A stretch of DNA of 64,000 nt from Phyllobates terribilis (lineage: Eukaryota), in NCBI RefSeq assembly GCF_046119375.1, contig NW_027362763.1:101928001-101992000 (forward strand), read 5' to 3'. The stretch's first letter is position 1. Each line of letters begins with the position of its first letter. The position numbers and the translations under genes are program-made. The notes beneath the pieces were generated by a model. That model was not told where the DNA came from, searched no databases, and saw only the letters and a program-made list of their open reading frames with translations. Positions 4,900 to 62,089 of the stretch are shown here, piece by piece.

Positions 4900-6124
4900 T
4901 GTAGCACCCTGAGGATTCGGCTGCTACAGGGGTATTGCACCTCAACCCAGAGGTGTGATATTCCACTCCCGGGTAAGGAAGGAGTGTGGAACTGAGCTCG
5001 GTAGGCTGCATGCACTACATACATCCCATTTCCGAGGAACAGGCCGACGGTACTCCCACTTAGAAATGTGCAGGTACGACCGAGTCTGTTCCTGGCTGGA
5101 GTGGGAGGGGGGTGGTACATCCCATGTAGTGTAGGGGCAGATAGGGGGTGCAGCCTGGGTAAAGTTAGGAGCTCATTGGGTGCTGGTCACCTGAGCTCAC
5201 ACATAGAGGGATATATAAGGTGGGCACCAACTAAGATCAGGGTCAGATGCAGAGGATCAGATGCAGGAAGTGAGTCAGCTGCAGAGAACAAGTCAGGAGA
5301 GGAGAGAAGAAAGACCAAGACCCAGAGTGAGAGGAGAAAGAGAAAGACCCAGAGCACAGAAGAGAAGGGACCCAAGAACCCAAATCAGAGCACCGGGTGA
5401 GGAGTCGGCAAAAGGGTACCGGAACCCAAACTGGTGGGGGTAAAAACAATCCCCAGCCAGAGACCGGAGACCGTGGGCAGCGTCTGTCACGGTCACCCAC
5501 CACATTCACCCCGAAGGCACACCACATGAAGGGTCAGGGAACCCAGGGCCAAGGGTGTCCCAACAGAAGGCCCGAGGGAGCTGGACCTAGGTGGATCACT
5601 GGTGGGGACGGCTGAAGAAAGGACAGAGGGAGAGCTCAGGGCCACGCTCCGGACTTGTTTGGGGGTTGGCTGGATCCAGGACCTGGTGGACGCAGCACGG
5701 CTCGGGTGGTCACTAGCAGCTGGAGTGACCAGTACAACATCTGCAGTAAGTAAACACCCTTAACTGCACAACCCGACTCTGTCTTCACTGCCGTCTGCAC
5801 TACACCACCACAACCCCCATCCTCTGCGCCTGTCCCCTCTGAGGCTATACCCCTCCCGTTGGGGGTTATCTCACCAAGCTGCGCACCCACCATCAGCCTC
5901 AGCGGACCCTGCTGCAGCGGCGGCCACAGTGACCGCATCACAACGGGTGGCGTAGTCGACACAAAAGAACTCTTAATAACATCTGTAGGACTGCCACATA
6001 ACACTGAGCTTGACGCCCTGGGCACGGGACCGGGTCACAGCCGCTCGGAGACTACAACCCCCCCCCATCTGATCCGGTGCCGGGTATTCCCCTCAAAAAG
6101 GAATATGTCCCAGGGGGCGCGTCA
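4900..6124 (+). mobile_element. Solo LTR (Ty3/Gypsy-like 4-bp TSD) inserted in the Tc1 transposase
   Basis: TG...CA ends; TSD TAAC at 4896-4899 and 6125-6128; Tc1 reading frame resumes across it; no gag/pol sequence. Confidence 0.85.
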
Positions 6125-8595: not shown

Positions 8596-11486
8596 CTAAA
8601 GAGAATATAAAGTTTCTATCTGAGATCTTAAAATTTATGAAAATCTAACACATTCCGATCACCACTAGCAATAGACATGAGCGGTTTGCTGGTGGATATC
8701 AATCTTTAATCCTTAAGCTCACTTCTATGAGGCAGCCCAAATATGCTAGTTTGGGGACAGCTTGGATTTACACCAGTTTATTCCCAAATTTATCACTATA
8801 AATCTGATGCCAGATGTGCATTTCATTTTTAAATACAAAGAGGATAAGTGGCAACCAAACACATTTGATTCCTCTAAATTAACTGTTTGGTTTAAAGTAA
8901 GAGAAACGGTGTTCTAATGCGCACAGCCGCCTCACAAAGTTGGCCGAACCAGCGAATTATAGCAGGATTGACTGACTGCGGTGTTTGGCATCCTTCTGAC
9001 TCTCCAGGTGTCAGGGAACAAAGATCAGGAAGATAGAAACTTATTGCACAATTCTTTTGCCTTTTTGAAGCTTAATCACTATCCTAAGTAATACACAAAA
9101 GAACTGTCAGCCACATGATATCTCTTCTAACTAACCCGTACAAAGGAACGTTTGGCTGGGATGGGGACATAAAAATTCAGTGGTTTGAGTTCAATCTAAT
9201 GATGCATTTTTCCTCTATAAAGATAATTTTGACAGTGGCAGTCTAACATTAAACCCAGGACCTCTCAAGCATTTATATGGTCTGAGAACCACAGCTGGAA
9301 AAATCTGGTGGCCACTTATCTCCAGTGAGAGAAAAAAGTATTGGGAGACTGAACTCCAACTTTTTCATCCTTTTTGTCATCTGATGTCTTCTGTCAGGTA
9401 CACATTGGATGGCGTGGCCTATAGGTATATTTAGATGGCCATTTGTATGGTCTGAGTAAAATTGGTCACACAAATGGACATTTGCCTCCAGACCATTGAC
9501 AGATCCAGCTGAATTTGATGTGAACTGTTGACAAGCAGATGCTCATACGCAGAAGTAACAAGGTCTCCATATACTAACACCTATTTTTCCTAACCTCCCT
9601 ATTGTCATATAATACTTATTTAACTCAACATCATGTGCCAATATACATTAGATGGTGATCAAGACCTGACAAATTTGGTAGGTTTGGATGACCTTTGCTT
9701 CTATGTATATGGGCATTTGTACAGCTGATGTAGCTAAAATAATTTGGATCTGCTTGTGATCTACATATAAATATCTCCTCTTTATGGCGAGAAACTCATT
9801 ATGTAATTTATATACATAAATTATCACTTATTTCATTAATCTACATAACTGACCATATTTTGTTTTTGCCTTGTTGACATACCTGTTAATTTGTTCTGTG
9901 CCAGTAAAACTTCTCCATATGACCCCTGGCCCAGCTCCTTGATGACGTTGTAGTGTTTAGAAATTCCTGAATCTCCAAGATTTGGAAGGCGGCCATTGCT
10001 GCTGGGAAGTCACTTTTGGCTAAGCAACAAACTCAATAGGACTCTAAAGGAAAATATAAGGAATATGATTAATACAACATCATGCAGTGATTACATTTCT
10101 GAGTTCTGTGGGCACTCATCATAATTAAGCCCCATGATCATTTAGAAACCCATCATAAACAGATGCGCCAGTCTGGGAAAGGATGGTTGACAACCCTTGT
10201 AAGAAGTATCTTGGTGGGCATATTGGTGGTCATTGATCACAATTGCTTTATGAAAAGGTTAGAGTCCAAATTAGGATAAATCTAAATGGTTCTACAGTAG
10301 TACTGCAGTGTTTGTATCTAGAGATTATTTTTTATATTTTGGAGGAATAGGACAAGTATGAAAATAAGAATCTGTGCTGGGTGTAATATTACTGGAAATG
10401 AGTGATTGCTGTATGATCATTTTGCAAGACCTGTAAACCCATACTAAATAACAATGGCTATACCATTGAAAAATAGTCTTACCTGGGTTGCGTTTTTGGT
10501 GACGTTGATGATAAATTAGGTTCTGCTTCAAAAAGTTGAGTGATCTCACTTTCTTATGGTTTTGTCTGAGAGGTCCTATCTTCACAGAGAAGTTCTCAGG
10601 AATAAATGAACAAGACTCATGTACTTCTATCTTTTATTGGGAAGCAGCTACCTTGCATTGAGGTCAATCTTCCTCCTTTGCCAATTGAATGTCGAAAACC
10701 ATCATATGATTAGAGGAATGTGTCACCTAGAACATGGACATTCATGTAGACCCTATTGTCTTTTAATTAGTAAATTGTCTAAGGAGCTGGTTGTGCCACA
10801 ATGGTACCAGGGAGATGCCCACCTTAATAATGTTTGTGTTGCTAGTAAATTGAAAATGTAATCCATTCTGAATTTATTCTACTCCCTATATTCACATCTC
10901 ACCTTCCTGACCTCCTGCTGCTTTCACCAAAGGAGAAACTGGACCCTTTTTTGTCATGCACGGTTCTTGTATCCTGTGTTTATGGCCATAAACTGACTCA
11001 ACAGATCTTGTAGAGTAGTCTTGTCCCAACTGACATTACATGGAAATAACAACAGAATTGTCTATTTGTCTTACAGTAAAGCTGCTAATACAACTAAGGG
11101 TAAAGGCCCCATACACATTAGATGAAAATAGGGCAACGATCGATCGTTCAATGATTGCCCCAAACACATCACAGAATATATTGGCCAATATTTATTTTTC
11201 GTGTAGTCAGAACTCCTCATCAGCCGAAAAAATCCAACTCCCCCCAACCAGTATGTTAAACAATTATAAATGTTCATCTGTCGAAATCCACAATCGTTTT
11301 TCTACCACAAAGACAACAGTAGCTCATGGTTGAGGTCAGACATTTCATTCTAGATATATCTAATGTGTAGGGGCTTCCGATGTTCCACACCCAGCTCGGA
11401 GTTGGCAGATTTGTAAGGTCTTTTTTTTACGCAAATCTGAGAAAGATCTGCTGGAAAACTAGCAAATTACATCTGCACCAAATTGT

Positions 11487-12377
11487 AACATAGTCTTCCT
11501 TCAACCTTAAAAACTGTTGCGAAGTCCATCTAGTTCAACCCATAGCCTAACATGTTGATCCAGAGGAAGGCAAAAAAAACCCATGTGGCAAACACTAAGC
11601 TCCATATTGGGGAAAAAAATTCCTTCCCGACTCCATACGACAATTAGACTAGTTCCCTGGATCAACGCCCTATCAAGGAATTTAGTATTTATAACCTGTA
11701 ATATTATACTTTTCAAGAAAGGCATCCAGGCCCTTCTTAAATGTTAGAAGTGAATCACTCATTACAACATCATGCAGCAGAGAGGCCCATAGTCTCACTG
11801 CTCTTACAGTAAAGAATCCGCGTCTGATTATGATTAAACCTTCTTTCCTCCAGATGTAGAAGATGCCCCCTTGTCCCCGTCTCTGGCCTCAGAGTAAAAA
11901 GATCAGTAGAAAGGTCTTTGTACTGTCCCCTCATATACTTGTACATAGTAATAAGATCACCCCTAAGCCTTCGTTTTTCCACAGTAAATAACCCCAAGTG
12001 TAATAACCTGTCTTGGTATTGCAGACCCCCCAGTCCTCTAATAACCTTGGTCGCTCTTCTCTGCACCCTCTCTAGTTCAGCTATGTCTTTCTTATACACC
12101 GGAGACCAGAACTGTACACAGTATTCTAAGTGTGGTCGCACTAGTGACTTGTATAGAGGTAAAATTATGTTCTCCTCATGAGCATCTATGCCTCTTTTAA
12201 TGCATCCCATTATTTTATTTGCCTTCTCAGCAGCTGCCTGACACTGGCCACTAAACGTGAGCTTGTCATCCACCAATACACCCAGGTCTTCTTCAGTTAC
12301 AGTTTTGCCCAGTGTTTTACAATTAAGCATATAATTATACATTTTATTTCCTCTGACCAAGTGCATTACCTTACATT
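11487..12377 (-). mobile_element. CR1 LINE, 3' part (RT C-terminus + 3' UTR), split by hAT copy 1
   Basis: KCKVMHL...LVRPHLEYCVQFWSP...ERVQRRATK...EKRRLRGDLITMYKY; aacatagt tail near 11487. Confidence 0.9.
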
Positions 12378-12869
12378 TAGTGTTGAGCCACCCCCGTAGT
12401 GTTCGAGTTCGGTTCGGTTCGTCGAACACCCGTGTGTTCGCCGAACTGTTCGTCGAACACCTTCGAACACCGTTAAAACCAATGGCAGGCAAACAAAAAC
12501 ACATAGAAACACATAGAAAACACCTTCAAAGGTGTCCAAAAGCTGACAAACTGCTCAGAAGACATAACTAACACATGGAAAAGTGACAAGTACATATAGT
12601 CATGCGAAAATAAGAGGTGGAGGAGTAAAAGGAGGGGGAGACACAGATATAGGCATGTCATGCCCTTCTAAAATCCAAAAAGTGAGAAGCCGACACGGCC
12701 AGTCCGCTCCTGCCCGTGCCACCTCCGTGTCGCCGGGTTTGTGCCAGAGCCGCGGTGAACCCTGACGGCCAGCCCCCCTCTCCCAATACTGGTGCCTGTC
12801 CGCTGGTGGGTCGAGCGAGCCCCCCTGTGGTGGAGGCAGCTCTAAGCTTTTTAATTTAAATTGTCTCTC

Positions 12870-13140
12870 TAATTTGAATGAATACACTTTAAATCCATTT
12901 ACAAGGATCTATTGGAGGGCAAGTCTCATGCCAGCAGCCGCGGTAATTCCAGCTCCAGTAGCGTCCACTAAAGCTGCTGCAGTTAAAAAGCTTTTATAAG
13001 GATCGAGCTCGGCTGTCCACCGCAAGGCATCCTACTGCCAGTCCCAGCCGCTATGCCTTGGGGTGCCTCCTGATGCTCTTCACTGAGTATCCCGTGGTCC
13101 CGAAGCATTTCATTTGAAAAAATTAAGTGTCCAAACTACA
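12870..13140 (+). pseudogene. Degenerate 18S rRNA fragment (530-loop region to V4) carried inside the hAT
   Basis: CACTTTAAATCC...ATTGGAGGGCAAGTCTcaTGCCAGCAGCCGCGGTAATTCCAGCTCCA...GCAGTTAAAAAGCT...TTTGAAAAAATTAAGTGT matches conserved eukaryotic SSU rRNA; ~270 bp with many substitutions. Confidence 0.9.
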
Positions 13141-13244
13141 GGTGGTGTAGCTTGCTTAACAGCCGGGATAATCCGCTGACTAGCAGACACTGCTACTAGG
13201 CACAAAGTATTTCCTGGGCTAGATGCAGTTAAAAATTTGTAATT

Positions 13245-15068
13245 AGATACTCTCGTTGGATGCTGAGAAAGCATTCCATAGAGTCTCCTGGCACGCCATA
13301 TATGATTCTCTTAAAAAGCTTGGGGTAGGGGTCTAGGGGACCCTTTTATAGCCAAAATCACGGCCCTGTATCGCAATACGTCACCTAGGCTGAAGATAAA
13401 TGGAACTGTAGCACCCTGAGGGCTCGGTTGCTAAAGACGTATTGCACCTCACCCAGAGGTGTGATATCTCACTCTCAGGTAAGGATGGAGTGTGGATCAG
13501 GACCCGACACCTGCATGCATTACACCACATTGCCGTGGGGCAGGGCGACCAATATGCCCCTGAGATGGGCACGACAGTCCCTGTCCCTGGCTGGAGTGGG
13601 GGGAGGGAACACTGAGGAAGGGGAACCCTGTAGTGCAGGAGCAGGGAGGAAGCAGTTCCTGGGTGCATTGAGAAGGGAGTATAAAAGGTGGGCACCATCT
13701 TAGTTCAGTGCAGAGAAGTCTGAGCAGAAGTGGCAGGGAGCAGGGGCTCTGCATGAGCTCTGCTCCAGAGGCGGGCCTAGTAACAGAGGCCCAGGCCTGG
13801 AAGAGGGAGAAGGAAGGAAGAGGAGCGGAGAAGGCTCCAGGAACGAGGAATGAAGGGATCCCAGGGGTGCGGACGGGCGAGTCGCCACCGCACGCCCGAA
13901 TCCACCTGCGTGGAGGGGTCAGGCCAAAGGGGGAGACCGGTCCCCGAACTAGTGGAGGCAGGAAACGACCCTCAGCTAGAAACCGGAGGCTCTGACATTT
14001 TATGTGGCGCAGCCCCTCGCTACACCCGCTAGGAAGGCACCACATAGGGTCAGGGAAACTGGCGCCAAGTTTACCAAGAGGAGGCCCGAGGCAGCCGGAC
14101 AGAAGTGTTGGTAAGAAAGGCCAGACAAAGGACACACAAAGGGGGTCCTGTGAAGTGCTCCAAAGTTATCTGGGAGTTGTCTGAGCCCCTCACCTGGTGA
14201 GCACAGTACGACGTGGGCAGCCGTTACCTGCAGATGTGGTCTGGATAATAAGAACTGTGAGTAAAGGCCCTGAACTGCATCACTGACTCCGTGTCGTTAC
14301 TGCTGCTGCCCTGCACCATCACCCCCATCCTCCGCATACACTGCCCTGAGGCTATACTCCTCCCGTGGGGAGTTATGCTACGCTCTGCTGCACCCACAAC
14401 ACCAGCCTCAGTGGTCTGCCCTGTAGCGGCGGTTCACTCTGACCGCAATCCACGGGTGGCGTAGTCGGACATTTAAACATGAAAACCACATAAATAGTTC
14501 CGCCACTGGTTTGACCGCCCTGAGCCACGGAACTGGGTCGCCGCCACGAAGACTACAACCACCAGCATCCACCAAAAAGGGTCCGGCTCCGGGTGTCCCA
14601 AGGCCCAGGGGGTGCGTCAGAACATTTTCATCACCTTTCACAATCACCAATGGGACAAGGCAGGGATGTCCTCTGTCCCCTCTCTTATACATCCTAGTGA
14701 CGGAGCACCTGCTCTCATCAATTCGCCATAACCCCAATATTAGGTGGATTGAGGTGGGAGGCACTGAGTACAAGTGCTCTCTATTTGCTGATGATGTCCT
14801 AGTATATATCACTCAATCACATATATCCATCCATGCTGTTATGGCTGAAATAGATCACTTTGTTACATGGTAAAATTTTAAAATCAATGCAGCGAAGTCT
14901 GAGGCCCTCGATGTCTCCCTCCCCAAATCCATATAGGATTCCATCCAGTCCAACTTTCCCTTTGCCTGGCCCTCACAGGGTATCAAATACTTAGGAATTC
15001 CTATTCATAGAGACCTCTCCCATCTATGTTATCTTAATTTTGGGCCCTTTATTGAACAACTCCATACA
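13245..15068 (+). mobile_element. L1/Tx1-type RT fragment inside hAT copy 1, interrupted by a solo LTR
   Basis: LDAEKAFHRVSW...INGT|FSSPFTITNGTRQGCPLSPLLY...SLFADD...GIKYLGI; the frame is continuous when 13407-14623 is removed. Confidence 0.85.
13407..14619 (+). mobile_element. Solo LTR, same superfamily as 4900-6124
   Basis: TGTAGCACCCTGAGG...GGTGCGTCA; TSD GAAC (13403-13406, 14620-14623). Confidence 0.85.
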
Positions 15069-15069
15069 G

Positions 15070-16635
15070 ACCACGGTTGGCAAGTTAGAACTGTAAGATT
15101 CACTACGTGAACCACTGGTGTTTTGTGGAAAAGCACATGTACACTGCGTTCCAAATTATTATACAAAAAGTGTTTAGGAGTGATAAGGGAAGAATTTGTT
15201 TGTGAGTTAAACTCATTGATGGTGATGTGTGTCAGGGCTCTTTATATCACTGTAAGCAATTGCAGACACCTGTGCTAATTAGTTTGGCAGGTGTGTCCAA
15301 TGAAAGGCAAGACTACTTAAGAAGGCTCTCTCACATTATTAAGCAGCCTACATTTTCTGCCAAAATGGGAAAGAAAAAGGATGTGTCGGCTGCTGAGAAG
15401 CAACAAATTGTGGAGTGTTTAGGTCAAGGCATGACTACAATCAACATTGTGCGATGATCAGGATGAAGTGTCCTGGCAATCAAGAAGTATGTAGCTGATT
15501 CACAGTACACATGTGTGCGTGCTGATAAGGGCAAATTGAGGACTCTTTCCTACAGGCAATTACGTCAGGTTGAAAGAGCAGCGGCAAAAAAGCCTTGTCA
15601 TAGCAGCAGACAAGTTTTTGAAGCTGCTGGTGCCTCCAACGTCCCCCGAACAACAAGATGCAGGGTCCTTCAGAGGTTTGCAGCTGTGCATGCGCCATCC
15701 TGTCGACCTCCTCTATCCACTTCACACAAGCAGAAACGGCTCCAGTGGGCCAAACATTACATGAAGACTGATTTCAAAACTGTTTTGTTCACGGATGAGT
15801 GCCGTGCAGCGCTCGATGGTCCAGATGGATGGAGTGGAGGATGGCTGGTTGATGGACACCCCACGCAAACACGGCTACAGCGCCAACAAGGAGGAGGTGG
15901 AGTAATGTTTTGGGCTGGAATCATGGGGCGAGAGATTGTCGGCCCCTTTAGGATCCCTGAAGGCGCTAAAGATGAACTCCATAATGTATGTGGATTTTCT
16001 CAAACAGCACTTCCTGCCATGGTTCAAGAAGAAGAACCGTGTATTTCACAGCAAGATCATTTTTCTGCATGATAATGCACCATCTCATGCTGCACATAAA
16101 ACATCTGCATCTCTGGCTGATATGGGCATAAAAGGGGACAAACTTATGGTGTGACTCCCATGCTCCCCTGACCTCTACCCCATTCAGAACCTTTGGAGCA
16201 TCATTAAAAGGAGTGTCTATGATGGCGGGAGGCAGTTCACATCTAAGCAACAGCTCTGGGAGGGTATTCTGTCCTCATGCAAAACAATTGAAGCAGAAAC
16301 CATCCAAAACCTGACAAATTCAATGGACGAGAGAGTTCAGAAGCTCCTTTCGAACAAGGGGTCCTATGTGAAAATGTAACATCACCTAGAATAAAGTTTT
16401 GAGTTGAAAACTGTTTGATTTCAGTTTCTAACAACCTGCTAATGCTTATAATTTCAAAAATGACCATTTTTTTGGTCTTTATTAAAATGAAAAGGTTGAT
16501 CGAAAAGTTTGGGGGATCTAAGAGTGTGGCAACCCAGTAGTCATGATTACTTCGAATTCTGACAATATGAGGGTCATGCTGCAGGTAGTGCAGCAAGAAG
16601 GCACTTATGTGTCTTGCGCATCTCGGAGCCCCAAA
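15070..16635 (-). pseudogene. Relic of a diverged second hAT transposase segment (15070-15141 and ~16510-16635), split by the Tc1
   Basis: The pieces align to 17290-17360 and 17450-17580 of the intact ORF (LHYLQHDPHIVRIRSNHDYWVATLLDP vs LHYLQHDPRIVRIRNNPDYWVATLLDP). Confidence 0.8.
15142..16500 (+). mobile_element. Tc1-like element with DD37E spacing (TRT-like), right end truncated, inside hAT copy 1
   Basis: TA|CACTGCGTTCCAAATTATT start; transposase 15365-16379 MGKKKDVSAAEK..., LFTDEC, HDNAPSH, SPDLYPIQNLW; 37 codons between the second D and the E position (E mutated to Q); stops and frameshifts. Confidence 0.85.
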
Positions 16636-16837
16636 ATTATTTTCCGGGCTAGATGCAGCTAAAAATTATTTTTAATTTTAAATCTGGTGAAGCTTTAGTA
16701 TAGATGGCCTAATAGGATCAGTGCTGCACACTGCTACAAAGCCCAAATTATTTTCCAGTCAAGATACAGATAAACATGATTAGTAATTTGAAAGCTTAAA
16801 ACGGTTGGTAGGGTGATTTTAACCAATCATCAAGCTT

Positions 16838-19800
16838 TTACTCTCCCCAGGATGACACAGGGGTAGAAAAGTCGTTTCGGATCCATGATTTGTTCATCTT
16901 TATGAACGTGAGTCTGTCTACATTATCAGTGGAGAGCTGCGTGCGCTTATCTGTCAGCACACCACCAGCAGCGCTGAACACACGTTCAGACAGAACGCTG
17001 GCTGCGGGGCATGACAAGATCTCCAAGGCGTAAGTGGCTAGCTCCGGCCATTTATCCAGATTGGAAGCCCAAAAAGAGCAAGGGTCCAGTGACACAGTCG
17101 TGGCTTCAATGTTTACTTGGAGATACTCCTGTACCATCGTCTCTAGGCGTTGACTATGTGTCAGACTTCTTGTCTCCTGTGGCCTTGCAAAGGATGGGCT
17201 AAAAAAGTGGTGAAATGATTCCGCAAAATTGATGTTACCAGCAGATACTGTGGTTCTGTTACGGTTTGAGTGCTGAACACTTGACGGTCCCACGGTTGGC
17301 AAGTTGGAACTGTGAGATTCACTACGTGCACCACTGGTATTTTGTGGAAAAGCACATGTAAGATTCTGCAACAGTCTCTGCTGATACTCCTGCATGCGTG
17401 CATCCCTTTCTATGGCAGGAATAATTTCTGCAAATTTACTTTTGTACCGGGGATCTAACAGTGTGGCAACCCAGTAGTCAGGATTATTTCTAATTCTCAC
17501 AATTCGAGGGTCATGTTGCAGGTAGTGCAGCAAGAAGGCACTCATGTGTGTTGCGCATCCAGGAGCACCAAGTCCCTGTTGTGTTGGTGGCGAGGTAACA
17601 ATCATGCTTCCTTCCTCTGTCCTCTCCCCCCAACCTCGCACAACAGAAATGTGATCAAGGTCTCCCTCATCTGATGAGTCTTCCATCAGTTCGTCCTCCA
17701 CTTCTTCCTGGGCTCCTGCACCTTCCTCACTAGTTTGGCTGCTACCATGCGCCCTGGTAAAACCATCTCCCTCACCCTCACATGCCTGCCGCCTTGGTGC
17801 TGCCGACCGTCTGGACCTTGCAGATGTTAGCCCTTCCGCATACAACTCCTCCTCCTCTACTTCCTCCACCTCCTCTTGTGCCACCACCTGACTCCGAATT
17901 CTGTTTAACATGTGCTCCAGCATGTAAATCACCGGAATAGTCATGCTGATAATGGCATCGTCAGCACTAAACATCTTCGTCGCCATTTCAAAACTGTGCA
18001 GAAGGGTGCATAGGTCCCTGATCTGAGACCACTCCTCCAGCGTGATTTGCCCCACCTCTGAATCTCGTTGGCCCAGGCTATACGTCAGAACGTATTGCAC
18101 CAGGGCTTGTCGGTGCTGCCACAGTCGCTGCAACATGTGCAGAGTTGAATTCCACCGGGTAGGCACATCGCATTTTAGCCGGTGAAGTGGCAGGCCCAAC
18201 GACTTCTGTAGAGATGTAAGTCGCTGAGCTGCGGGATGCGAACGGCGGAAGTGAGCACACAGCGACCGTGCCCTCTGCAGAAGGCCATCTAGTCTGGGAT
18301 AGTGGGCTAAAAATTGCTGGACAACCAGGTTCAACACGTGAGCCATACAAGGCACGTGTGTGACATTGCCCCGGCGAAGGGCCGCACCCAGGTTTGCAGC
18401 ATTGTCGCACACGGCCTTCCCTGGTTTCAGGTCCAGTGGAGACAACCATTCATGAAATTGGTTCTCCAGAGCTGACCACAACTCCTCAGCTGTGTGACTC
18501 ACATTTCCCAGACATTTCAATGTAAAAACCGCCTGACGTTGAGCCCTACTGCCAGCATAGTAAGGAGGTGTGCAGGATCCCTTCTGCGCAGTTAGAAAGC
18601 TTGTGGCATGACCAGACAGGCTTTGGGTGCAGGTGGAAGACCGAGAGGAGGTTGAGGAGGCAGAAGCAGTGGAGGAACTTTGACATAAAGAGGATTGACG
18701 CACAACTCGTGGGGACGGCAAGACTTGGACAGCAGCCCCTTGTCCTGCTGTCACCATAGTTACCCAGTGCCCAGTCAGCGACATGTAACGCCCCTGTCCA
18801 TGCCTACTTGTCCAAGTGTCTGTGGTGAAATGCACCCTGTCACACACAGAGTTTCTCAAAGAAGCGGTGATGTTGTGTGCGACATGCTGGTGGAGCGCAG
18901 GCACACCTTTCTTTGAGAAGTAGTGCCGACTGGGCATCTGGTACTGGGGCACTGCGACGGACATAAGGTCTCGAAAATCCTCTGTGTCCACCAGGCGGAA
19001 AGGCAGCATTTCTGTAGCCAAGAGCTTGCAGATGGTGAAATTCAACCTCTTAGCTTTCTCATGGCTAGTAGGAAATGGTCTTTTACTTGTCCACATCTGA
19101 GGGACCGAGGGCTGGCTATTGTGCTTAGACGGGGTTGATAAGGGTGTCCCCGGCAAACTGCCGGTCTGTGAGGAAGATGCAGGCGGACATGTTAGGTTGC
19201 CTTGATCCAAAGGTGGTGCTATCGATGTCGGACAGCGCTCAAGACCAGCTGGTGTTACCACCTCCAAAGAAAATGATGACCTGCCAATCACGCTGGCTGT
19301 TGCGGGTAAAGAGGTGGCAGGTCTGCGCCCCAAAACAGGTGTGACTGCTGTCCCCCCAGTCACAGAGGATGAAGAGGCCGCGGATGCACAAGATATGGCA
19401 GACGGTGGTTGGCCCGGCCGGCTAGACCGCATTGTAGCACACTGAGCTTCCCACTGCAACTTATGCTTCATGTCCATGTGCCGGTTCATGCATGAAGTAC
19501 TCAAACTATGTATTTTTTGGCCTCTACTTAGCTTTTGCTGACAAATGTTACAGATAACACGAGTTGGGTCATCTTTATCGATCTGAAAAAATGCCCAGGC
19601 TATGCAAGGCTTAGCACCCATGCGACCTGAAGAGCCACCACGACTTGTGGTGAGAGGCAGAGTTGTGTTTGAGGATGCAGTTGTTGACGTGCTTCCAGTA
19701 CTACGTCTCTGTCCAGGAAGGCGCAACCTGACCTCGTCGTCACTAGCATCTTCCTCCACCTCCTCTGCTGACCTCATCTCTTGGCTGACTGTGGGTTGAC

Positions 19801-20515
19801 AGTAAGTGGGATCTCCGACCTCATCATCATCACCCTGTGCGTTATCACACCCGTCGTCCTCAGAGCCAACCTGTTCCTGCCCTGACAAAAAACTAAAGTT
19901 GTCGCTCCAATCAGGTATTTGAGTCTTATCATAGTCTTCCTCATTGTCTCCACCAACAGGAGTTACAGTTTGGGAATGAGGGTCTACATTATGGTCAGAA
20001 CCTTCTGCGTCTGGTCCTGGATCCGACTCATAAAGATTCTGGGCATCAGTGCAGATCATTTCCTCGTCTGGATTCACAGAAGCGCTGGAGTCGACCTCTG
20101 ATTCCCAGGCTATAGTATGAGTAAACAGCTCTGCAGACTCAACCATCTGTTCTACCTCATACTCAGACGGGCAGCTGGAGATTTGGGAGCTGTGAGGAAG
20201 CAAGTGCGATTTGGGTGACACCTTTGAGGACTGGAGTATTTGTGATGTTGAAGTTGATGTGGAGGAGAGCCCACTTAAAGGAGCACTTGATATCCGTTGA
20301 AGCACCTGCTGTTTTTGTGCCTCATCTGGAATTTGTAGCGATTGGCGTGGCCGTAAGAAAGGGATCTGATCACATTGTCCGCTAAAAGAAGTAGACATTT
20401 TAGTTTGGCTGGAAGATGGTCTTTCTTCTGCACCTACCCCACGGACACAACCTTTTTTCCCCTTCCCAACACGCCTATTCCCCTTTCCACCAGCAGCAGG
20501 CCTTTTTCCACTCAT
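16838..20515 (-). CDS. hAT (Ac-type, ZBED4-like) transposase, uninterrupted 1225-aa ORF
   Basis: BED finger (W-x2-F...CNIC...HMDMKH); catalytic motifs TTDTW, VCDNA, SERVFS; CMAH; PTRWNST; C-terminal dimerization domain (WPELATYALEILSCPAASV). Confidence 0.92.
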   Translation of the reverse strand: MSGKRPAAGGKGNRRVGKGKKGCVRGVGAEERPSSSQTKMSTSFSGQCDQIPFLRPRQSLQIPDEAQKQQVLQRISSAPLSGLSSTSTSTSQILQSSKVSPKSHLLPHSSQISSCPSEYEVEQMVESAELFTHTIAWESEVDSSASVNPDEEMICTDAQNLYESDPGPDAEGSDHNVDPHSQTVTPVGGDNEEDYDKTQIPDWSDNFSFLSGQEQVGSEDDGCDNAQGDDDEVGDPTYCQPTVSQEMRSAEEVEEDASDDEVRLRLPGQRRSTGSTSTTASSNTTLPLTTSRGGSSGRMGAKPCIAWAFFQIDKDDPTRVICNICQQKLSRGQKIHSLSTSCMNRHMDMKHKLQWEAQCATMRSSRPGQPPSAISCASAASSSSVTGGTAVTPVLGRRPATSLPATASVIGRSSFSLEVVTPAGLERCPTSIAPPLDQGNLTCPPASSSQTGSLPGTPLSTPSKHNSQPSVPQMWTSKRPFPTSHEKAKRLNFTICKLLATEMLPFRLVDTEDFRDLMSVAVPQYQMPSRHYFSKKGVPALHQHVAHNITASLRNSVCDRVHFTTDTWTSRHGQGRYMSLTGHWVTMVTAGQGAAVQVLPSPRVVRQSSLCQSSSTASASSTSSRSSTCTQSLSGHATSFLTAQKGSCTPPYYAGSRAQRQAVFTLKCLGNVSHTAEELWSALENQFHEWLSPLDLKPGKAVCDNAANLGAALRRGNVTHVPCMAHVLNLVVQQFLAHYPRLDGLLQRARSLCAHFRRSHPAAQRLTSLQKSLGLPLHRLKCDVPTRWNSTLHMLQRLWQHRQALVQYVLTYSLGQRDSEVGQITLEEWSQIRDLCTLLHSFEMATKMFSADDAIISMTIPVIYMLEHMLNRIRSQVVAQEEVEEVEEEELYAEGLTSARSRRSAAPRRQACEGEGDGFTRAHGSSQTSEEGAGAQEEVEDELMEDSSDEGDLDHISVVRGWGERTEEGSMIVTSPPTQQGLGAPGCATHMSAFLLHYLQHDPRIVRIRNNPDYWVATLLDPRYKSKFAEIIPAIERDARMQEYQQRLLQNLTCAFPQNTSGARSESHSSNLPTVGPSSVQHSNRNRTTVSAGNINFAESFHHFFSPSFARPQETRSLTHSQRLETMVQEYLQVNIEATTVSLDPCSFWASNLDKWPELATYALEILSCPAASVLSERVFSAAGGVLTDKRTQLSTDNVDRLTFIKMNKSWIRNDFSTPVSSWGE

Positions 20516-20632
20516 TTTGGTGGTTAACTAATTCACAACTCTGGAGTTGTTTGCACAAAAAAACAATGGATGGTAACCGAGCAGAGCTGAGTGGCCAAAC
20601 TGTGGTATTAGGCCAAAACTATTGGCTGGGTT

Positions 20633-20810
20633 AGATGCAGAAAAAAATTATTTTTAATTTGCAACCTGATGGAGGTCAGTATAGATGGACTAATAGACCA
20701 AGTCCCACACACCGCTAGAAGCCCAAATATTTTTTCAGAGCTAGATGCAGAAAAAAATTATATTCAGTTTGCAACCTGATGGAGGTCAGTATAGATGGAC
20801 TAATAGAATG
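20633..20810. repeat. ~110-bp internal module of the hAT: 2 tandem copies here, 3 in copy 2 (43323-43620), relatives at ~13190-13245 and ~16640-16770
   Basis: Repeated TAGATGCAGAAAAAAATTA...CCTGATGGAGGTCAGTATAGATGGACTAATAG at 110-bp spacing. Confidence 0.8.
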
Positions 20811-21720
20811 ATGCTATGCCCAAAAGATTTTACTTCACTAGGTGCAGTAAAAAAATTGGTATTCTATACACAGGTGTTATATCTTGCAACACAGGCTACT
20901 CCACTGACTAACACACTCTGCAATAGGCCAAAAAGGATTAGCTTTGCTAGATTCAGCCAAATGCTGTGAAAAAAACTTGCACAGCACTGGCACAGACCTG
21001 CCTGGCAAAAACTGATAGGAACTCATGTAACCTAGTCCTGAAAAGGACTCCAATTACAATTAGTCTTTACTCCCACAATCTATCTATTTAAGAGCACAGA
21101 CCTCCCTGATAAAAGTCGTAGGAAATGCTGTAACCTAGTCCTTAAAAGGACTGCAATCATAACTATTCCCTAGTCCCAAGCTATCTGTATATTTGTGCGA
21201 AAATTGGCTTGAAATTAACAAGGTATAGCGCACACAGCAACAGCGGTGCCGTCTAACACGCAGCTGCAGCAGTGAGAAAATGGTGGCGACGGGGAAAATG
21301 GCTTGGTCTTATAGGGCAAGGACATGTGACATACACTGCCAATCACACATGCCCTTGCTTGTGTGAAAAAAAGCACTTCGCTCCGTGTGTGCGCTGCTGA
21401 TAGATTGACAGATTGCACCTCCCCACTGCAAATGCGGGAAAGAGAAAAAAAAATGGAGATCTTCATTGTTCCTGCAGAGATCCATCCCCTGCCCCTCCCC
21501 CCGCCCCGCTGTACACTCAAACTGCGTATTAACATTAATTTTCATCATTACTGAGAAAAAATCCAGTTATGATTTTGGTGCACGAACAGTTATCGAACAT
21601 AACCTCGAACAGCCGAATTTTTCTCAAATTGTTCGTGTTCGCCGACCGGCTCGAACACCGCCCAAAACAGCTCGAATTTGAGATTGGCAAACAGTTCGAG
21701 TAGAACAACGCTCATCTCTA

Positions 21721-21910
21721 CTTACATTTATCCCCATTAAAGCTCATTTGCCATTTATCAGCCCAAGCTTCTAGTTTACTTAGATCCTCCTGTAATATAA
21801 AATTGTCCTCCTCAGTATTGATTACCCTGCAGAGTTTAGTGTCATCTGCAAATATTGAAATATTACTCTGTATGCCCCCTACAAGGTCATTAATAAATGT
21901 TAGAAAGAAG
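21721..21910 (-). mobile_element. CR1 LINE, 5'-truncated remainder
   Basis: FINDLVGGIQSNISIFADDTKL...WADKWQMSFNGDKCK joins in frame to 12377 when the hAT and one TSD are removed. Confidence 0.9.
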
Positions 21911-22527
21911 TTTGGATTAAAAATTGTTTGGATAATGAAGGACGCAAAGAAATAATACTCTTAAAATCAAGACAAAATATCAGAAGTAAAATATTTTTTT
22001 TAATTTCAAATGTCATTTAGGATTACTTCTTCCTCATTCTAACTAATTTGTTTGAATTCATTTATAAATCCAGATTCTACAACAGATTCTGCTCAGAAAA
22101 TTTAGGAAGCATTTGGGTGAGATTTGTAAAATGTCAGCCCCTTATTTGCTGCAGTAATACACTGTCGACATTACCTGCGCAGACTCAGAACATCTGAATG
22201 AGGCTTTCTGGGAATTTATTTATTTTTATACACATTAAAATGTTTATCAGTGCGCTCAATCGGATTTTTACCCATTTTCTGTCCATGTCCATTTTTCCTC
22301 ATCAGTGGTCCATCTGGTTTTCTTATGCAAAAAAAAAAATTTCAAGCTTCTACCTATTAAATAGTAAAAATGGAAAGACAGTGCCCTCAGGTTGTCCATG
22401 TGTCATCCATAAACAGTCCCATAGCCTGTTATCTATCTATCTATTGTCTCACATCTATCTCAGATCTTTCAGCTGACAATTATCTCATGTGTATGGGGGG
22501 CTCCACAGCATTTGGTCTTGTCTCTTA

Positions 22528-22935: not shown

Positions 22936-23417
22936 NNNNNNNNNNNNNNNNNNNNNNNNNNNNNNNNNNNNNNNNNNNNNNNNNNNNNNNNNNNNNNNNN
23001 NNNNNNNNNNNNNNNNNNNNNNNNNNNNNNNNNNNNNNNNNNNNNNNNNNNNNNNNNNNNNNNNNNNNNNNNNNNNNNNNNNNNNNNNNNNNNNNNNNNN
23101 NNNNNNNNNNNNNNNNNNNNNNNNNNNNNNNNNNNNNNNNNNNNNNNNNNNNNNNNNNNNNNNNNNNNNNNNNNNNNNNNNNNNNNNNNNNNNNNNNNNN
23201 NNNNNNNNNNNNNNNNNNNNNNNNNNNNNNNNNNNNNNNNNNNNNNNNNNNNNNNNNNNNNNNNNNNNNNNNNNNNNNNNNNNNNNNNNNNNNNNNNNNN
23301 NNNNNNNNNNNNNNNNNNNNNNNNNNNNNNNNNNNNNNNNNNNNNNNNNNNNNNNNNNNNNNNNNNNNNNNNNNNNNNNNNNNNNNNNNNNNNNNNNNNN
23401 NNNNNNNNNNNNNNNNN
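22936..23417. other. Assembly gap (482 N)
   Basis: Run of N. Confidence 1.
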
Positions 23418-26861: not shown

Positions 26862-27799
26862 TAGTTATGACCTAGCACTAAAATGCTCGGATACGCTTTA
26901 CTTGGGTCGAGGAAATCCTAATGCTCGGGTGCTCGACCTGAGTAACGAGTACACTGTAAATCAATGGGGAAACTCGAGCATTTTTCTAGTGACCCTGCAT
27001 GAGCAGTGCATACAGCTGAATTTCACTGCCACAAAATGACAAGGTGAGATATGGCTTGGTGTATGACGTTAGCAACTGAAAAAAATTGTTTTAAAATAGA
27101 GCTGAATTTCAACCCCACCAAATGACAAGATGAACTACTATGGCTTACTTTTTTTTCACTTGCTAATGTGAAACAGCATTTTTAAAGGTGTACTCGTGCA
27201 TGGAGCACAATAGAAGCAGTGCACGACAGACTTCTGTGACATGGGCCCTGCTGTCTGTGTGGATCTTGGTAATGGTACAAGAAGAAAAAAAAATCTGCTG
27301 TAAGGTCGATTTCACAGCCACACAGGACAATAGCGATCTAAACTATCTGACTTGGGCGGTTGCTTCTATCTAACTAGCTAAAATCTCTCAGTATACAGGA
27401 ACAGCTCATGTCCACTTTCTATATTGAGGACATTGTTTTTTTCAGCAGCCAATGGCACAAGCCCTTGTCTGGACAGTGGGGATGCTCACTGCACCCTGAT
27501 TGGCTAGCCGCACACATAGTTAGGAAAAAAATTACAAGTGCGCCACTCCTCTGAGCACTTCAGAGCTCTCCCCAGCCCCTCCCCTCATCAAACCCCTCCC
27601 CCCGCTCATCATACACCACCACTATGCTAGCTATAGTATTTAGTTGCAACACAATAATTTCCCGCACTTTTTCACCAGTTTTACCTATTTTTGCAGATTT
27701 TAATAAAAAATGCTGGTTTCCGATCACTAATCCGAATGTGCCATTTTGTGCCGAATTTGAAACTTGCGCTTGTTTTTTGAACATATTCGCTCATCACTA
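26862..27799. mobile_element. Old non-autonomous hAT-like element predating the duplication (paralog ~49370-53055, later interrupted)
   Basis: Right end CGCTCATCACTA, degenerate left end TAGTTATGA..., CTCG/CGAG subterminal motifs; no clean TSD. Confidence 0.5.
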
Positions 27800-31876: not shown

Positions 31877-32176
31877 TAGCGTTGAGCGAGTATGTTCTGT
31901 CCGAGTATGCTCGGACCAAGCTCTGAGTAGTTACAGCTGCTCGGTGATATGGTTGAATCGCTCCCGTGTGCATGATTTGCAACGGTTTGACAGCTTTATT
32001 ACATGGGAGGAATGTGTAAGAAATAGACATTCCTCACATGTAATAAAACTGTCAAACAGTTGCAAATCATGCACACGGGAGCGATTCAACCATATCACCG
32101 AGCAGCTATAAATACTCGGAGCTCGGCCTGAGCATACTCGGCGAAAGGATTAATAGAACATACTCGCTCAACACTA
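31877..32176. mobile_element. 300-bp hAT MITE
   Basis: TAGCGTTGAGCGAGTATGTTC / GAACATACTCGCTCAACACTA; TSD GTGGTCAC (31869-31876, 32177-32184); long internal palindrome. Confidence 0.9.
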
Positions 32177-35000
32177 GTGGTCACTTATCCCTTTTTTATT
32201 TAAAAATGAAATGCACATTTGATTAAACCATGCAGTTAATTTAGAGGAAAATAAGAGAAACCGTGTGAGGCTGCTGTGCACATTAGAACTAAGTTGACCG
32301 AACCAGCGAATTAGTGCAGAATTGACTATCTGAGGGGTTTGGCATCCTTCCAACTCTCCAGATAGATGTCAGGGAACAGAAAGATCAGGAAGATAGAAAC
32401 TTATTGCACAATTGTTTGTTTTTTGGAGCTTTAAAAATCACTATCATAAGTAATACACAAAAGAACTGTCAGCCTCATGATATCTTGTCTGACTAACCCG
32501 TACAAAGGAATGTCTGGCTCGGATGGGGATATAAAAATTCAGCTGTTTGAGTTCAATCTCATGATGTATTTTTCCTTCATAGAGATAATTTTGACAGCGG
32601 CTATCTAACATTAAACCCAGGACCTCTCTCAAGCATTCATGTGTTCTCTATGATAGAGCCACTGCTGGAATAATCTAGTGGCCACTTATCTCCAATGAGA
32701 AAAAAAGTATTGAGAGGCTGAACTCCCAACTTTTTCATCCTTTTTGTCACCTGATGTCTTCTGTCAGGTACACATTTGATGGCGCAGCCTATAGATATAT
32801 TTAGATGGCCATTTGTATGGTCTGAGAGTAAAATTGGCCACACAAATGGATATTTTTCTACAGACCTTTGGCAGATCCAGCTGAATTTGATGTGAACAGT
32901 TGACAAGCAGATGCTCATACACAGAAATATCAAGGTCTCGTATACTAAAAATTGCTATCAAGCTAAGACCTATTTCTCCCGATCTCCCTATTGTCATATG
33001 ATACTTATTTAACCCAGCATCATGTGTCTGGAAAGAGTTGACCATTGCTGCTATGCGTATGGGCTTTTTTATATCTGATGTAGCTAAATATAATTTGGAT
33101 CTGTCTGTGATCTACATATAAATATCCCAGCTCTATGGCCAGATAAACTCATTATTTCATTTTTATGCATAATTACCACTTTTATTTCATCAATCTACAT
33201 AACTGACCATATTTTGTTTTTTTGCCTTGTTGGCATACCTGTTAATTTGTTCTGTGCCAGTAGAACTTTTCCGTTTGACCCGTGGCCCAGATCCTTGATG
33301 ACATTATAGCATTCAGAAATTTCCTGAATCTCCAAGATTTGGAAGGCAGCCATTGCTGCTTGGAAGTAGCTTTGGGCTAAGCAGCAGAAACTCAGTAGGA
33401 CTCATAAAGGAAAATATAAGTAATTGATTAATACAGCATCATACAGTGATTACATTTCTGAGTTCTGTGGGCACTCATCATAATTAAGCCCCATGATCAT
33501 TTAGAAACCCATCATAAAAAGATGTGCCAGTCTGGGAAAGGATGGTTGACAACCCTTGTAAAAAGTTACTTGGTGGGCATATTGGTGGTCACTAACCTTT
33601 TCATAAAGCAATTGCGATCATAGACAAAATTAGGATAAATCTAAATGGTTCTACAGTAGAACAGAAGTGTTTTTTATCTAGAGATTAGTTTTTATATTTT
33701 TGAGAATTAGGACAAGTAAGAAAATTAATCTGTGCCTGGTGTAATGTTACTAGAAATGAGAATGGTTGGTTGGTTGTTTGATCATATGGCAAGAATACCT
33801 CATCACCATAATAAATAAGCGGATATACCTTTGAAAAGTAGTCTTACCTGGGTTGGGTTTTTGGTGAAGTTGATGATAAATTAGGTTCTGCTCCAAAAAG
33901 TTGAGTGATCTCACTTATGATTTTGTCTGAGAGGTCCTAGCTCCACAGAGAAGTTCTCAGGAATAAATGAACAAGACCCATGTACTTCTAGCTTTTATAG
34001 GGAAGCAGCTAACTGGCAATTAGGTCCATCCTCCTCCTTTGCCAGTTGGATGTCATAAACCTCCATAGGATTACAGAGGAATGTGTCACCTAGAACATGG
34101 ACATTCATGTAGACCCTATTGTCATTTAATTAGTAAACAGTCTGTCTAAGGAGCTGGTTGTGCCACAATGGTACCAGGGAGGCCCCCACCTTAGTATTTT
34201 GTATTTCTAGTAAATTGCAAATGTTCTGAATTTATTCCACCACCCTATATTCACGTCACACCTTCCCGACCTCCTGCTGCTTACACCAAAAGTTTTTGGT
34301 TCTTGTCGCCAGTGTTTATGGCCATAAACTGACTCAATATATCTTGTAGAATAGTCTTGTCTCAACTGACCTTAGCCCCTTCACAACCCTGAGATTTTCC
34401 CTTTTTTTGCATTTTCGTTTTTTGCTCCCCTTGTTCCCAGAGCCATAGCGGTTTTATTTTTTGGTCAATATGGCCGTGTGAAAAAAAAAAAATAGCGCCA
34501 TTTTCTAAGACTTGTAGCATCTCCATTTTTTGGGATCTGGGGCCAGATGAGGGCTTATATTTTGCACACCGAGCTGAAGTTTTTATTGAAACCATTTTGG
34601 GGTAGATTCGATGTTTTGGTTGCCCGTTATTGCATTTTATTGCAATGTTGCGGCGACCACATAACGTAATTCTGACGTTTTAGAATTTTTTTCTCTTTAC
34701 ACCGTTTACCGATAGGATTAATTCTTTTTTTATATTGATCGGGCGATTCTGAACACGGCGATACCAAATGTGTATGTAGGTTTTTTTTTTCATTTTAATT
34801 TGAATGGGGCGAAAGGGGAGTGATTTAAACCTTTTTATATTTTAATTTTTTAAATATTTTTAAAAACCTTTTTTTTTTGCTTGCTTCTATTGTCTCCATA
34901 GGAGACTAGAAGCAGCACTTGTCTCATCGCCTCTACTACATACAGATGATCAGCAGATCACCTGTATGTAGCAGAAATGGTCCTGTGCTATGAGCGCCGA

Positions 35001-35015
35001 CCACTAGGTGGCGCT
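35001..35015 (+). promoter_or_regulatory. CTCF-consensus motif CCACTAGGTGGCGCT within the piggyBac-like element
   Basis: Match to the CCASYAGRKGGCR consensus; binding not shown. Confidence 0.4.
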
Positions 35016-35545
35016 CATAGCAACCAGCTCATGACAACCACTGGTTATGACTAGTGTTGAGCCACCCCCGTAGTGTTCGAGTTCGGTTCGGTTCGTCGAA
35101 CACCCGTGTGTTCGCCGAACTGTTCGTCGAACACCTTCGAACACCGTTAAAACCAATGGCAGGCAAACAAAAACACATAGAAACACATAGAAAACACCTT
35201 CAAAGGTGTCCAAAAGCTGACAAACTGCTCAGAAGACACAACTAACACATGGAAAAGTGACAAGTACATATAGTCATGCGAAAATAAAAGAGGTGGAGGA
35301 GTAAAAGGAGGGGGAGACACAGATATAGGCATGTCATGCCCTTCTAAAATCCAAAAAGTGAGAAGCCGACACTGCCAGTCCGCTCCTGCCCGTGCCACCT
35401 CCGTGTCGCCGGGTTTGTGCCAGAGCCGCGGTGAACCCTGATGGCCAGCCCCCCTCTCCCAATACTGGTGCCTGTCCGCTGGTGGGTCGAGAGAGCCCCC
35501 CTGTGGTGGAGGCAGCTCTAAGCTTTTTAATTTAAATTGTCTCTC

Positions 35546-35815
35546 TAATTTGAATGAATACACTTTAAATCCATTTACAAGGATCTATTGGAGGGCAAGT
35601 CTCATGCCAGCAGCCGCGTAATTCCAGCTCCAGTAGCGTCCACTAAAGCTGCTGCAGTTAAAAAGCTTTTATAAGGATCGAGCTCGGCTGTCCACCGCAA
35701 GGCATCCTACTGCCAGTCCCAGCCCCTATGCCTTGGGGTGCCTCCTGATGCTCTTCACTGAGTATCCCATGGTCCCGAAGCATTTCCTTTGAAAAAATTA
35801 AGTGTCTAAACTACA
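35546..35815 (+). pseudogene. Degenerate 18S rRNA fragment in hAT copy 2
   Basis: Near-identical to 12870-13140; 1-nt deletion in GCCGCG(G)TAA. Confidence 0.9.
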
Positions 35816-35919
35816 GGTGGTGTAGCTTGCTTAACAGCCGGGATAATCCGCTGACTAGCAGACACTGCTACTAGGCACAAAGTATTTCCTGGGCTAGATG
35901 CAGTTAAAAATTTGTAATT

Positions 35920-37733: not shown

Positions 37734-37806
37734 GACCACGGTTGGCAAGTTAGAACTGTAAGATTCACTACGTGAACCGCTGGTGTTTTGTGGAAAAGCA
37801 CATGTA

Positions 37807-39169: not shown

Positions 39170-39505
39170 CGAAAAGTTTGGGGGATCTAAGAGTGTGGCA
39201 ACCCAGTAGTCATGATTACTTCGAATTCTGACAATATGAGGGTCATGCTGCAGGTAGTGCAGCAAGAAGGCACTTATGTGTCTTGCGCATCTCGGAGCCC
39301 CAAAATTATTTTCCGGGCTAGATGCAGCTAAAAATTATTTTTAATTTTAAATCTGGTGGAGCTTATTATAGATGGCCTAATAGGATCAGTGCTGCACACT
39401 GCTACAAAGCCCAAATTATTTTCCAGTCAAGATACAGATAAACATGATTAGTAATTTGAAAGCTTAAAACGTTTGGTAGGGTGATTTTAACCAATCATCA
39501 AGCTT

Positions 39506-51757: not shown

Positions 51758-51774
51758 TTAATATAAAATGCTTG

Positions 51775-55276: not shown

Positions 55277-55459
55277 CATTCACCGTGAAATGTCATTTTA
55301 ACATTTTACAACCTTATCTGGCCATGTGTTGTGTGACACATGCTTAAAGTGCTGAAAAGACCAGGGAACAGCATGGGGAAGACCCCTGGAAGCATCTCTG
55401 ACTCCCAGGTCACTGTCTAAAAGTGTGCCCATCATAAGTGATCCTTACCGCATCAGAAG

Positions 55460-62021: not shown

Positions 62022-62089
62022 TGTAAATGAAGTAAAATAGCTTACACTTGCACTGTCAATGGAAAAAGGGTAATAAAGAGTAGATTAGA

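Follow-up and report, generated by a model that had tools for sequence, protein, structure and literature searches.

Can a hAT transposon that holds pieces of ribosomal DNA (rDNA) and of other transposable elements (TEs) still move as one unit, and is such an element a carrier of foreign DNA in its own right? This question is raised by a 64,000-nucleotide stretch of the genome of the poison frog Phyllobates terribilis (NCBI RefSeq assembly GCF_046119375.1, contig NW_027362763.1, positions 101,928,001 to 101,992,000 of the forward strand; hereafter the window), where two near-identical copies of a 9.4-kb composite hAT element are found. A preliminary description of the window had proposed that the element transposes together with four kinds of foreign cargo, and that it is a Pack-type but autonomous vertebrate carrier of rDNA and of other TE classes. 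The analysis described below showed that the composite was complete before the hAT-type transposition that made the two copies. Taking all observations together, we consider it likely that the composite is an autonomous-looking hAT of dendrobatoid frogs, the non-coding left arm of which was filled with debris, and that it was mobile afterwards. The coordinates of all features are collected in Table 1.

Two copies of the composite element at unrelated sites

The two copies have the same orientation, and the distance between their starts is 22,674 bp. In the full alignment, they differed by 75 mismatches over 9329 aligned bases (99.2% identity) and by 10 indels, one of which is an additional 115-bp tandem unit in copy 2. 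Both the substitutions and the indels were distributed evenly over the length of the element. All internal junctions are shared by the two copies, as the preliminary description had stated: each of the 19 internal landmarks compared, cargo junctions included, was either identical in the two copies or differed at 1 of 25 bases.

The similarity between the copies breaks off exactly at TAGTGTTGAGC on the left side and at the reverse complement of TAGAGATGAGC on the right side. These are the 11-bp terminal inverted repeats (TIRs) of the element, which start with TAG and match each other as inverted repeats at 9 of the 11 positions. Each copy is flanked by its own exact 8-bp target site duplication (TSD), the chance probability of which is 4^-8 in each case. 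The TSD of copy 1 is CTTACATT (12370-12377 and 21721-21728), and that of copy 2 is the different sequence GTTATGAC (35044-35051 and 44530-44537). Compared with the target preference of Ac-type elements (nTnnnnAn), and with only two sites at hand, GTTATGAC fits the pattern and CTTACATT fits it at position 2 only. The hexamers CGAACA and TGTTCG occur 14 times in the element, with six in each of the terminal 250-bp segments and two in the other 8.8 kb. Such terminal clustering is the usual subterminal pattern of hAT elements. With an 8-bp TSD, short TIRs, and the transposase domains described below, the element belongs to the hAT superfamily.

Self-BLAST of the window revealed an old tandem segmental duplication, both units of which have since been struck independently by several TE insertions. 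Within this duplication, a far more similar pair of sequences (12378-21724 and 35052-44533) stood out in the self-comparison, corresponding to the two copies of the composite. The copies lie at non-homologous points of the two units, copy 1 between segments B and C of unit 1 and copy 2 between segments A and B of unit 2. In unit 2, segment A ends at 34374 and segment B begins at 44823, with copy 2 and the repeat that hosts it (host 2) in between. Segments A and B abut in unit 1 at 11035-11038, and host 2 is not present there. In unit 1, segment B ends at 11384 and the homology resumes at 22297, with copy 1 and its host repeat (host 1) in between. The points that bracket these two sequences are only ~140 bp apart in unit 2, which lacks host 1. 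The preliminary claims that the copies sit in different hosts, each missing from the other unit, and that they are not part of the segmental duplication were thus borne out.

The host repeats themselves record the insertions. Host 1 is a retrotransposon with a reverse transcriptase (RT) domain (RVT_1, 1.4e-5, in 21721-21960, minus strand). Searches against the sequences of solved structures gave no clade for it. By coordinate arithmetic, its reading frame runs on across copy 1 after one copy of the TSD is discounted. For host 2, an uninterrupted paralogue is present at 50470-51771, in which the insertion site of copy 2 occurs once and is empty. Because this paralogue terminates in GGGG followed by TTAA, the assignment of host 2 as a piggyBac-like element is plausible.

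The two copies therefore share termini and internal junctions, differ in their 8-bp TSDs, and occupy non-homologous sites, one of which is preserved empty in a paralogue. Moreover, they have diverged by 0.8%, compared to ~15% for the surrounding duplication. From these observations it follows that the composite moved whole after its interior had been assembled, as the preliminary description had suggested. The element was cut and pasted, or copied by post-excision repair, at least once.

Table 1. Features of the two copies of the composite hAT element, their host repeats, and other elements in the window. Parts of the element are given for copy 1 unless stated otherwise.
Feature	Position	Strand	Remarks
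Copy 1 of composite hAT	12378-21720	- (transposase-gene strand)	9343 bp
Left terminal region	12378-12810		11-bp TIR TAGTGTTGAGC, then clustered CGAACA/TGTTCG subterminal motifs
18S rDNA-derived fragment	12811-13175	+	Rfam RF01960, 74.2 bits, E 1e-18; core match 64.5 bits
Displaced segment from the ~110-bp repeat array of the element	13117-13262		66-71% identical to 20850-20961 and 16661-16791
L1-type ORF2 RT fragment	13247-15070	+	~610 bp of L1 sequence; RVT_1 1.1e-10
Solo long terminal repeat (LTR)	13407-14619	+	1213 bp, TG..CA ends, nested in L1 fragment; 4-bp TSD GAAC at 13403-13406 and 14620-14623
Relic of the element's own transposase gene	15071-16629 (15071-15143 and 16512-16629)	-	Two pieces, split by Tc1
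Putative Tc1/mariner element	15144-16511	+	Nested in relic, directly after TA; left end present, right end and TIR missing
Second displaced piece of ~110-bp repeat array	16622-16803		74-77% identical to 20613-20815
Intact hAT transposase open reading frame (ORF)	16838-20515	-	1225 amino acids (aa); Pfam zf-BED (PF02892) 4e-10, Dimer_Tnp_hAT (PF05699) 9e-14
Degenerate array of ~105-115-bp tandem repeats	20595-21194		Upstream of the ORF; one unit more in copy 2
Right terminal region	21195-21720		Subterminal CGAACA motifs and TIR TAGAGATGAGC on minus strand
Host 1, 5'-truncated non-LTR retrotransposon	11385-22296 (11385-12377 and 21721-22296)	-	Interrupted by copy 1
Copy 2 of composite hAT	35052-44529	-	9478 bp, same orientation as copy 1
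Broken transposase gene of copy 2	39506-43205	-	Compared to copy 1: one frameshifting deletion, two in-frame insertions, no nonsense change
Host 2, repeat resembling a miniature inverted-repeat transposable element (MITE)	34375-44822 (34375-35051 and 44530-44822)		Interrupted by copy 2
Tandem segmental duplication	~3520-28062 and 29752-53320		Old; 79-89% identity, typically 85%
Third large hAT	53744-63226		9483 bp; TAGTGTTGAGCGA at both ends, perfect 8-bp TSD GTCCTTGT
hAT MITE	31877-32176		300 bp; same TIR core, perfect TSD GTGGTCAC; duplication unit 2 only

The transposase gene and the source of mobility

The ORF of copy 1 encodes a protein with a long N-terminus of low complexity (~300 aa), a BED zinc finger, an RNase-H-like core, and the hAT C-terminal dimerization domain. 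Its matches to zf-BED and Dimer_Tnp_hAT exceed the Pfam cut-offs, and the Hermes transposase was matched with E-values from 2e-19 to 4e-20. No introns were detected in the gene of copy 1. The presumed catalytic and motif residues Asp566, Asp704, Cys723, His726, Trp788, and Glu1177 are common to 15-16 of 16 anuran relatives. Full-length relatives of the protein are 45-50% identical and are annotated as ZBED4/6-like in anurans. Closer matches, 72-89% identical, are fragments of the same family from Ranitomeya variabilis, R. imitator, P. terribilis, and Anomaloglossus baeobatrachus. An exact look-up of the copy 1 protein gave no record, and metagenome scans with the TIR and with peptides of the transposase found nothing.

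The fragments of the same family often sit within chimeric gene models. Four models from R. imitator and P. terribilis (P0001, P0002, P0003, and P0071) hold fragments that are 74-89% identical to the transposase of the composite. Their fusion partners are DUF4174, chromo/RT, C2H2 zinc fingers, and WD40. These models represent either exonization events or annotation chimeras. The R. imitator model P0071 was also examined for conservation of the cargo, on which it proved uninformative, being a chimera with a WD40 gene. Since gene models of other poison frogs already contain pieces of this transposase, caution is called for in gene annotation.

The preliminary description had regarded the element as autonomous. 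For copy 1, this appears plausible from its intact ORF, the conserved motif residues, and the presence of both ends, which have served in an actual transposition. The claim does not extend to copy 2, the ORF of which is broken (Table 1). Between the two genes, 15 codons differ non-synonymously and 4 synonymously, a ratio that looks neutral.

An alternative with some weight is that the composite is a passenger mobilized in trans, by another copy of its family or by a related hAT, and that the ORF of copy 1 is intact merely because the move was recent. In its favor, the codon differences give no signal of constraint since the two copies split, and the gene of copy 2 is already broken. In addition, the 11-bp TIR core TAGNGNTGAGC was found 9 times in the window, compared to 0.5 occurrences expected, and these belong to at least three hAT lineages. 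On the other hand, the ORF of copy 1 is complete and carries all of the conserved motif residues. Beyond the 11-bp core, the termini of the composite have no occurrence in the window other than in copies 1 and 2. Furthermore, the window's other hAT transposase gene is no longer intact, and the protein it encodes is only 35-55% identical to that of the composite. We consider mobilization in trans possible, but clearly less probable than the view of an autonomous-looking hAT given at the outset.

Composition of the left arm

The preliminary description had counted four kinds of foreign cargo in the element. Apart from the solo LTR and the Tc1 element, the arm to the left of the transposase gene is a patchwork, consisting of ~285 bp of 18S rDNA, ~130 bp of the element's own repeat array, ~610 bp of L1 RT sequence, ~190 bp of its own transposase gene, and the repeat array once more. 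Only one of these pieces is host DNA that does not derive from a TE.

This one piece is the 18S fragment. It extends over at most ~365 bp by the Rfam match and is contiguous over ~285 bp, with ~12854-13137 corresponding to model positions ~477-780. The fragment is decayed and has lost one hairpin. Its equivalent in copy 2 (35487-35850) was matched by the same Rfam model with 69 bits. The 18S sequence is thus found at the same internal position in two copies with different TSDs, which is transduplication in the broad sense.

The L1 fragment had its best match among solved structures in human L1 ORF2p (1e-13), compared to 0.007 or worse for R2. It is truncated at both ends, interrupted by one insertion (the solo LTR), and damaged by at least one frameshift and two in-frame stops. 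The fragment was examined for the hallmarks of retrotransposition, and a 3' end, poly(A), and a TSD belonging to it are all missing. It adjoins the displaced repeat piece on one side and the transposase relic on the other. The L1 piece does not look like a primary retrotransposition insertion.

The solo LTR within the L1 fragment was described previously as splitting it with a GAAC duplication. Two related solo LTRs, at 4900-6124 (TSD TAAC) and at 51775-52967 on the minus strand (TSD CAAG), have the same boundaries. These two are 91% identical to each other, and their family is 67-74% identical to the LTR of the composite over the alignable stretches. The codon phase of the L1 sequence relative to GAAC is equal on either side of the LTR.

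The transposase relic derives from the gene of the element itself, as its two pieces correspond to 17290-17360 (94% identity) and 17449-17571 (89% identity) of the intact gene. The 88 bp that lie between these two segments are lacking in the relic. Relatives of the transposase also matched the relic at the protein level. The putative Tc1 element that splits the relic showed matches to HTH_Tnp_Tc3_2 (5e-5, under the Pfam cut-off), Tc3 (3e-4), Sleeping Beauty (8e-3), and DDE_3 (0.017). Its transposase gene is broken, with at least one change of frame between the open frames that bear the helix-turn-helix (HTH) and DDE regions, and the element is truncated on the 3' side. The insertion at TA and a truncated end had been noted in the preliminary description; both copies of the composite share these junctions. 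The solo LTR and the Tc1 element each have their own target signature (GAAC and TA, respectively), which marks them as ordinary insertions nested in the composite and not as sequences that it captured.

The remaining pieces of the patchwork come from the ~110-bp repeats of the element. The second displaced piece is joined to the relic via a microhomology of 4-6 bp (CCAA/CCCAAA). In the array upstream of the ORF, the difference of one unit between the copies is located in the stretch 20595-20815 of copy 1, which corresponds to 43285-43613 of copy 2. An origin of the ~110-bp repeats from the 18S piece, with which they share a 12-mer, was considered and rejected, given that chance alone would produce ~2-3 such matches in 9.3 kb. 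A search of the repeat arrays with Rfam found no rRNA signal.

The count of four kinds of foreign cargo is thus not supported: the LTR and Tc1 had inserted into the element, the relic is its own gene, and the 18S piece alone is non-TE host sequence. The term Pack-type is not supported either. Pack-TYPE transposons (Pack-MULE, Pack-CACTA, and Pack-hAT) are by definition non-autonomous carriers of coding-gene fragments (PMC8903248). The composite resembles them as a TIR element with a TSD, the non-transposon DNA between the ends of which was duplicated upon moving. It differs from them in having a transposase ORF and no fragment of a coding gene; when the open frames of the left arm were scanned for host protein-coding fragments, only RT and Tc1 transposase domains were found.

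There remains the broader proposal of a Pack-type autonomous carrier that habitually captures and spreads rDNA and other TE classes. The 18S fragment, which is host non-TE sequence, and the internal L1 fragment are both situated inside the TIRs and have moved with the element. In addition, the ~9% divergence of the relic suggests that the arm has been carried for far longer than the 0.8% split of the two copies. Nevertheless, two of the four cargo items bear insertion signatures of their own, host protein-coding fragments are absent from the open frames scanned, and a single cargo configuration was seen. The definition of Pack-TYPE elements given above also speaks against it. Finally, other repeats also fill an unrelated 9.5-kb hAT in the window, as would be expected if they accumulate passively in a genome saturated with TEs. 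We therefore regard habitual capture as unlikely. The same low likelihood applies to its strongest form, namely that the family is currently mobile and self-sufficient, and that it captures host and TE fragments time and again through repair and disperses them. If this were true, the family would be an animal counterpart of the transduplicating elements of plants that keeps its own transposase, and many copies with different captured inserts, rDNA pieces among them, would be expected genome-wide.

From the proposal of a transposing unit, it is the movement of the composite as a whole that stands, and not a new kind of cargo carrier. The composite is accounted for by nested insertions and imprecise repair in a genome rich in repeats, and its debris is passenger DNA with no evident function.

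Proposed order of events

The composition of the arm suggests a sequence of three steps. In the first step, an earlier excision would have left a double-strand gap, and error-prone repair with template switching would have laid down the patchwork as filler. We infer this because the patchwork fragments are without insertion hallmarks and at least one of them is joined by microhomology. Filler from error-prone gap repair after excision is known for Ac/Ds of maize and the P elements of Drosophila. In the second step, an LTR retrotransposon would have inserted and collapsed to the solo LTR, and the Tc1 element would have inserted and then been deprived of its right end by a deletion. The third step would be the last move, which may have been a short-range hop driven by the transposase of the element itself or of a sibling copy. 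The short distance between the copies (22.7 kb) and their shared orientation fit local reinsertion. Local reinsertion in the same orientation has been reported for hAT-like clusters (PMC8903248). The left arm is probably much older than this last move, because the relic is ~9% diverged from the live gene, compared to 0.8% between the two copies.

Several points weigh against the view that an autonomous-looking hAT acquired its debris in this way and moved afterwards. Only two copies are visible in the 64-kb window. The template-switching origin is inferred from the arrangement of the fragments and one clear microhomology, and stepwise insertion followed by deletions would give a picture similar to that of the patchwork. 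That the ORF is still intact at 0.8% divergence could be due to recency alone, and the TIR core is shared by other hAT lineages in the window. Lastly, the only N run in the window, an assembly gap at 22936-23417, lies 1.2 kb from copy 1, outside both the element and host 1.

The gap also bears on the question of whether one copy is an assembly artefact, such as a mis-joined haplotype or a collapsed repeat that was placed twice. The repeat-rich genome and the proximity of the gap to copy 1 would make such an error conceivable. However, the 75 substitutions and 10 indels are spread evenly between the copies, and each of the four junctions joins distinct host sequence, with the matching TSD at the opposite end of the copy. 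With the gap lying outside the element and host 1, an artefact is highly improbable. Least credible of all is an origin of the copies by segmental duplication or by gene conversion between the tandem units instead of transposition. The copies do share their orientation, and each lies within a unit of the tandem duplication, but their positions are non-homologous (B/C in unit 1 and A/B in unit 2), they sit in different host repeats that are each missing from the other unit, the similarity ends exactly at the TIRs, and each copy has an exact 8-bp TSD.

Comparison with known elements

The patchwork in the left arm resembles the filler found in Ac/Ds and P elements, which likewise consists of short fragments, includes pieces of the element out of order, and shows short microhomologies. 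The classic cases of abortive gap repair in these elements are shortened, non-autonomous derivatives. In the composite, by contrast, the full gene and both ends survived next to the patchwork.

In its general architecture, the composite is similar to hATs of the type of medaka Tol2 and Hermes. It shares with them the 8-bp TSD, short imperfect TIRs, clustered subterminal motifs, and a single transposase with a BED finger, a DDE core, CxxH and RW motifs, and a C-terminal hAT dimerization domain. Unlike Tol2-type elements, the composite has an ORF of 1225 aa with the N-terminal low-complexity extension of ~300 aa and no detected introns, and ~4.4 kb of its length is debris. It is about twice the size of Tol2. 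Its 9.4 kb are nevertheless within the capacity of this superfamily, as Tol2 moves 10-11 kb at undiminished efficiency and makes 8-bp TSDs (PMC8151067).

Host-derived sequence inside hAT and other DNA transposons has also been described. A complete hAT with captured histone H3 sequence is present in Pseudocercospora and related fungi (PMC6710886). Like the composite, this element bears a transposase and has host-derived sequence inside its TIRs that was amplified together with it. The fungal element holds a protein-coding gene and has hundreds of copies, whereas the composite, in a vertebrate, holds a decayed 18S piece and is visible in two copies. Turmoil-1 of Caenorhabditis elegans is another animal DNA transposon with host-derived sequence, namely protein-coding fragments held within its terminal repeats (PMC2572040), but it is not a hAT. 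Known hAT biology is thus unchanged by the composite, because its size lies within known capacity and capture by complete hATs has precedent.

The value of the locus lies elsewhere. Two copies that are 0.8% apart, one of them with an intact ORF, provide a clean case, at the level of sequence, of a hAT that moved recently in a giant frog genome saturated with repeats. They show that a load of 4-5 kb of nested and patched-in sequence need not stop a DNA transposon from moving. Such mobile debris helps to explain how fragments of rDNA and of unrelated TEs become scattered, and how chimeric TE annotations arise.

Other hAT elements and repeats in the window

The third large hAT in the window, which is bounded by the same 11-bp TIR core as the composite, belongs to a different family. 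Its transposase gene (~58143-61060, minus strand) is the broken one mentioned above and was recognized by Dimer_Tnp_hAT (1.4e-9). The element is loaded with LTR-like pieces and tandem repeats. Because this 9.5-kb hAT likewise carries nested repeats, long debris-filled hATs are common in the window. Two of its LTR-like pieces, each ~710 bp long (54238-54952 on the minus strand and 57499-58206 on the plus strand), are 67% identical. They are in inverted orientation, with the 3' ends of the LTRs facing outwards. An LTR piece is also situated 3' of the gene in the third hAT, and LTR-like sequence ancestral to both hATs was therefore considered. This possibility was rejected in favor of independent insertions, because the transposases are 35-55% identical, the LTR pieces are ~76% identical, and the LTR of the composite has its own TSD.

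The 300-bp hAT MITE (Table 1) was found in duplication unit 2. At its counterpart in unit 1 (~8818-8880), the site is present once, within a stretch of ~45 bp with an orientation opposite to that in unit 2. A lone TIR-like end was observed at 27789-27799 on the minus strand, and the segments 26862-26985 and 49368-49497 showed subterminal-like homology to the left end of the third hAT. These features are at paralogous positions of both duplication units; they probably represent an older hAT remnant that predates the duplication. Positions 1-2000 of the window showed a strong G-over-C skew of 0.54 in sequence that is GC-neutral, and this region resembles the antisense strand of a coding repeat.

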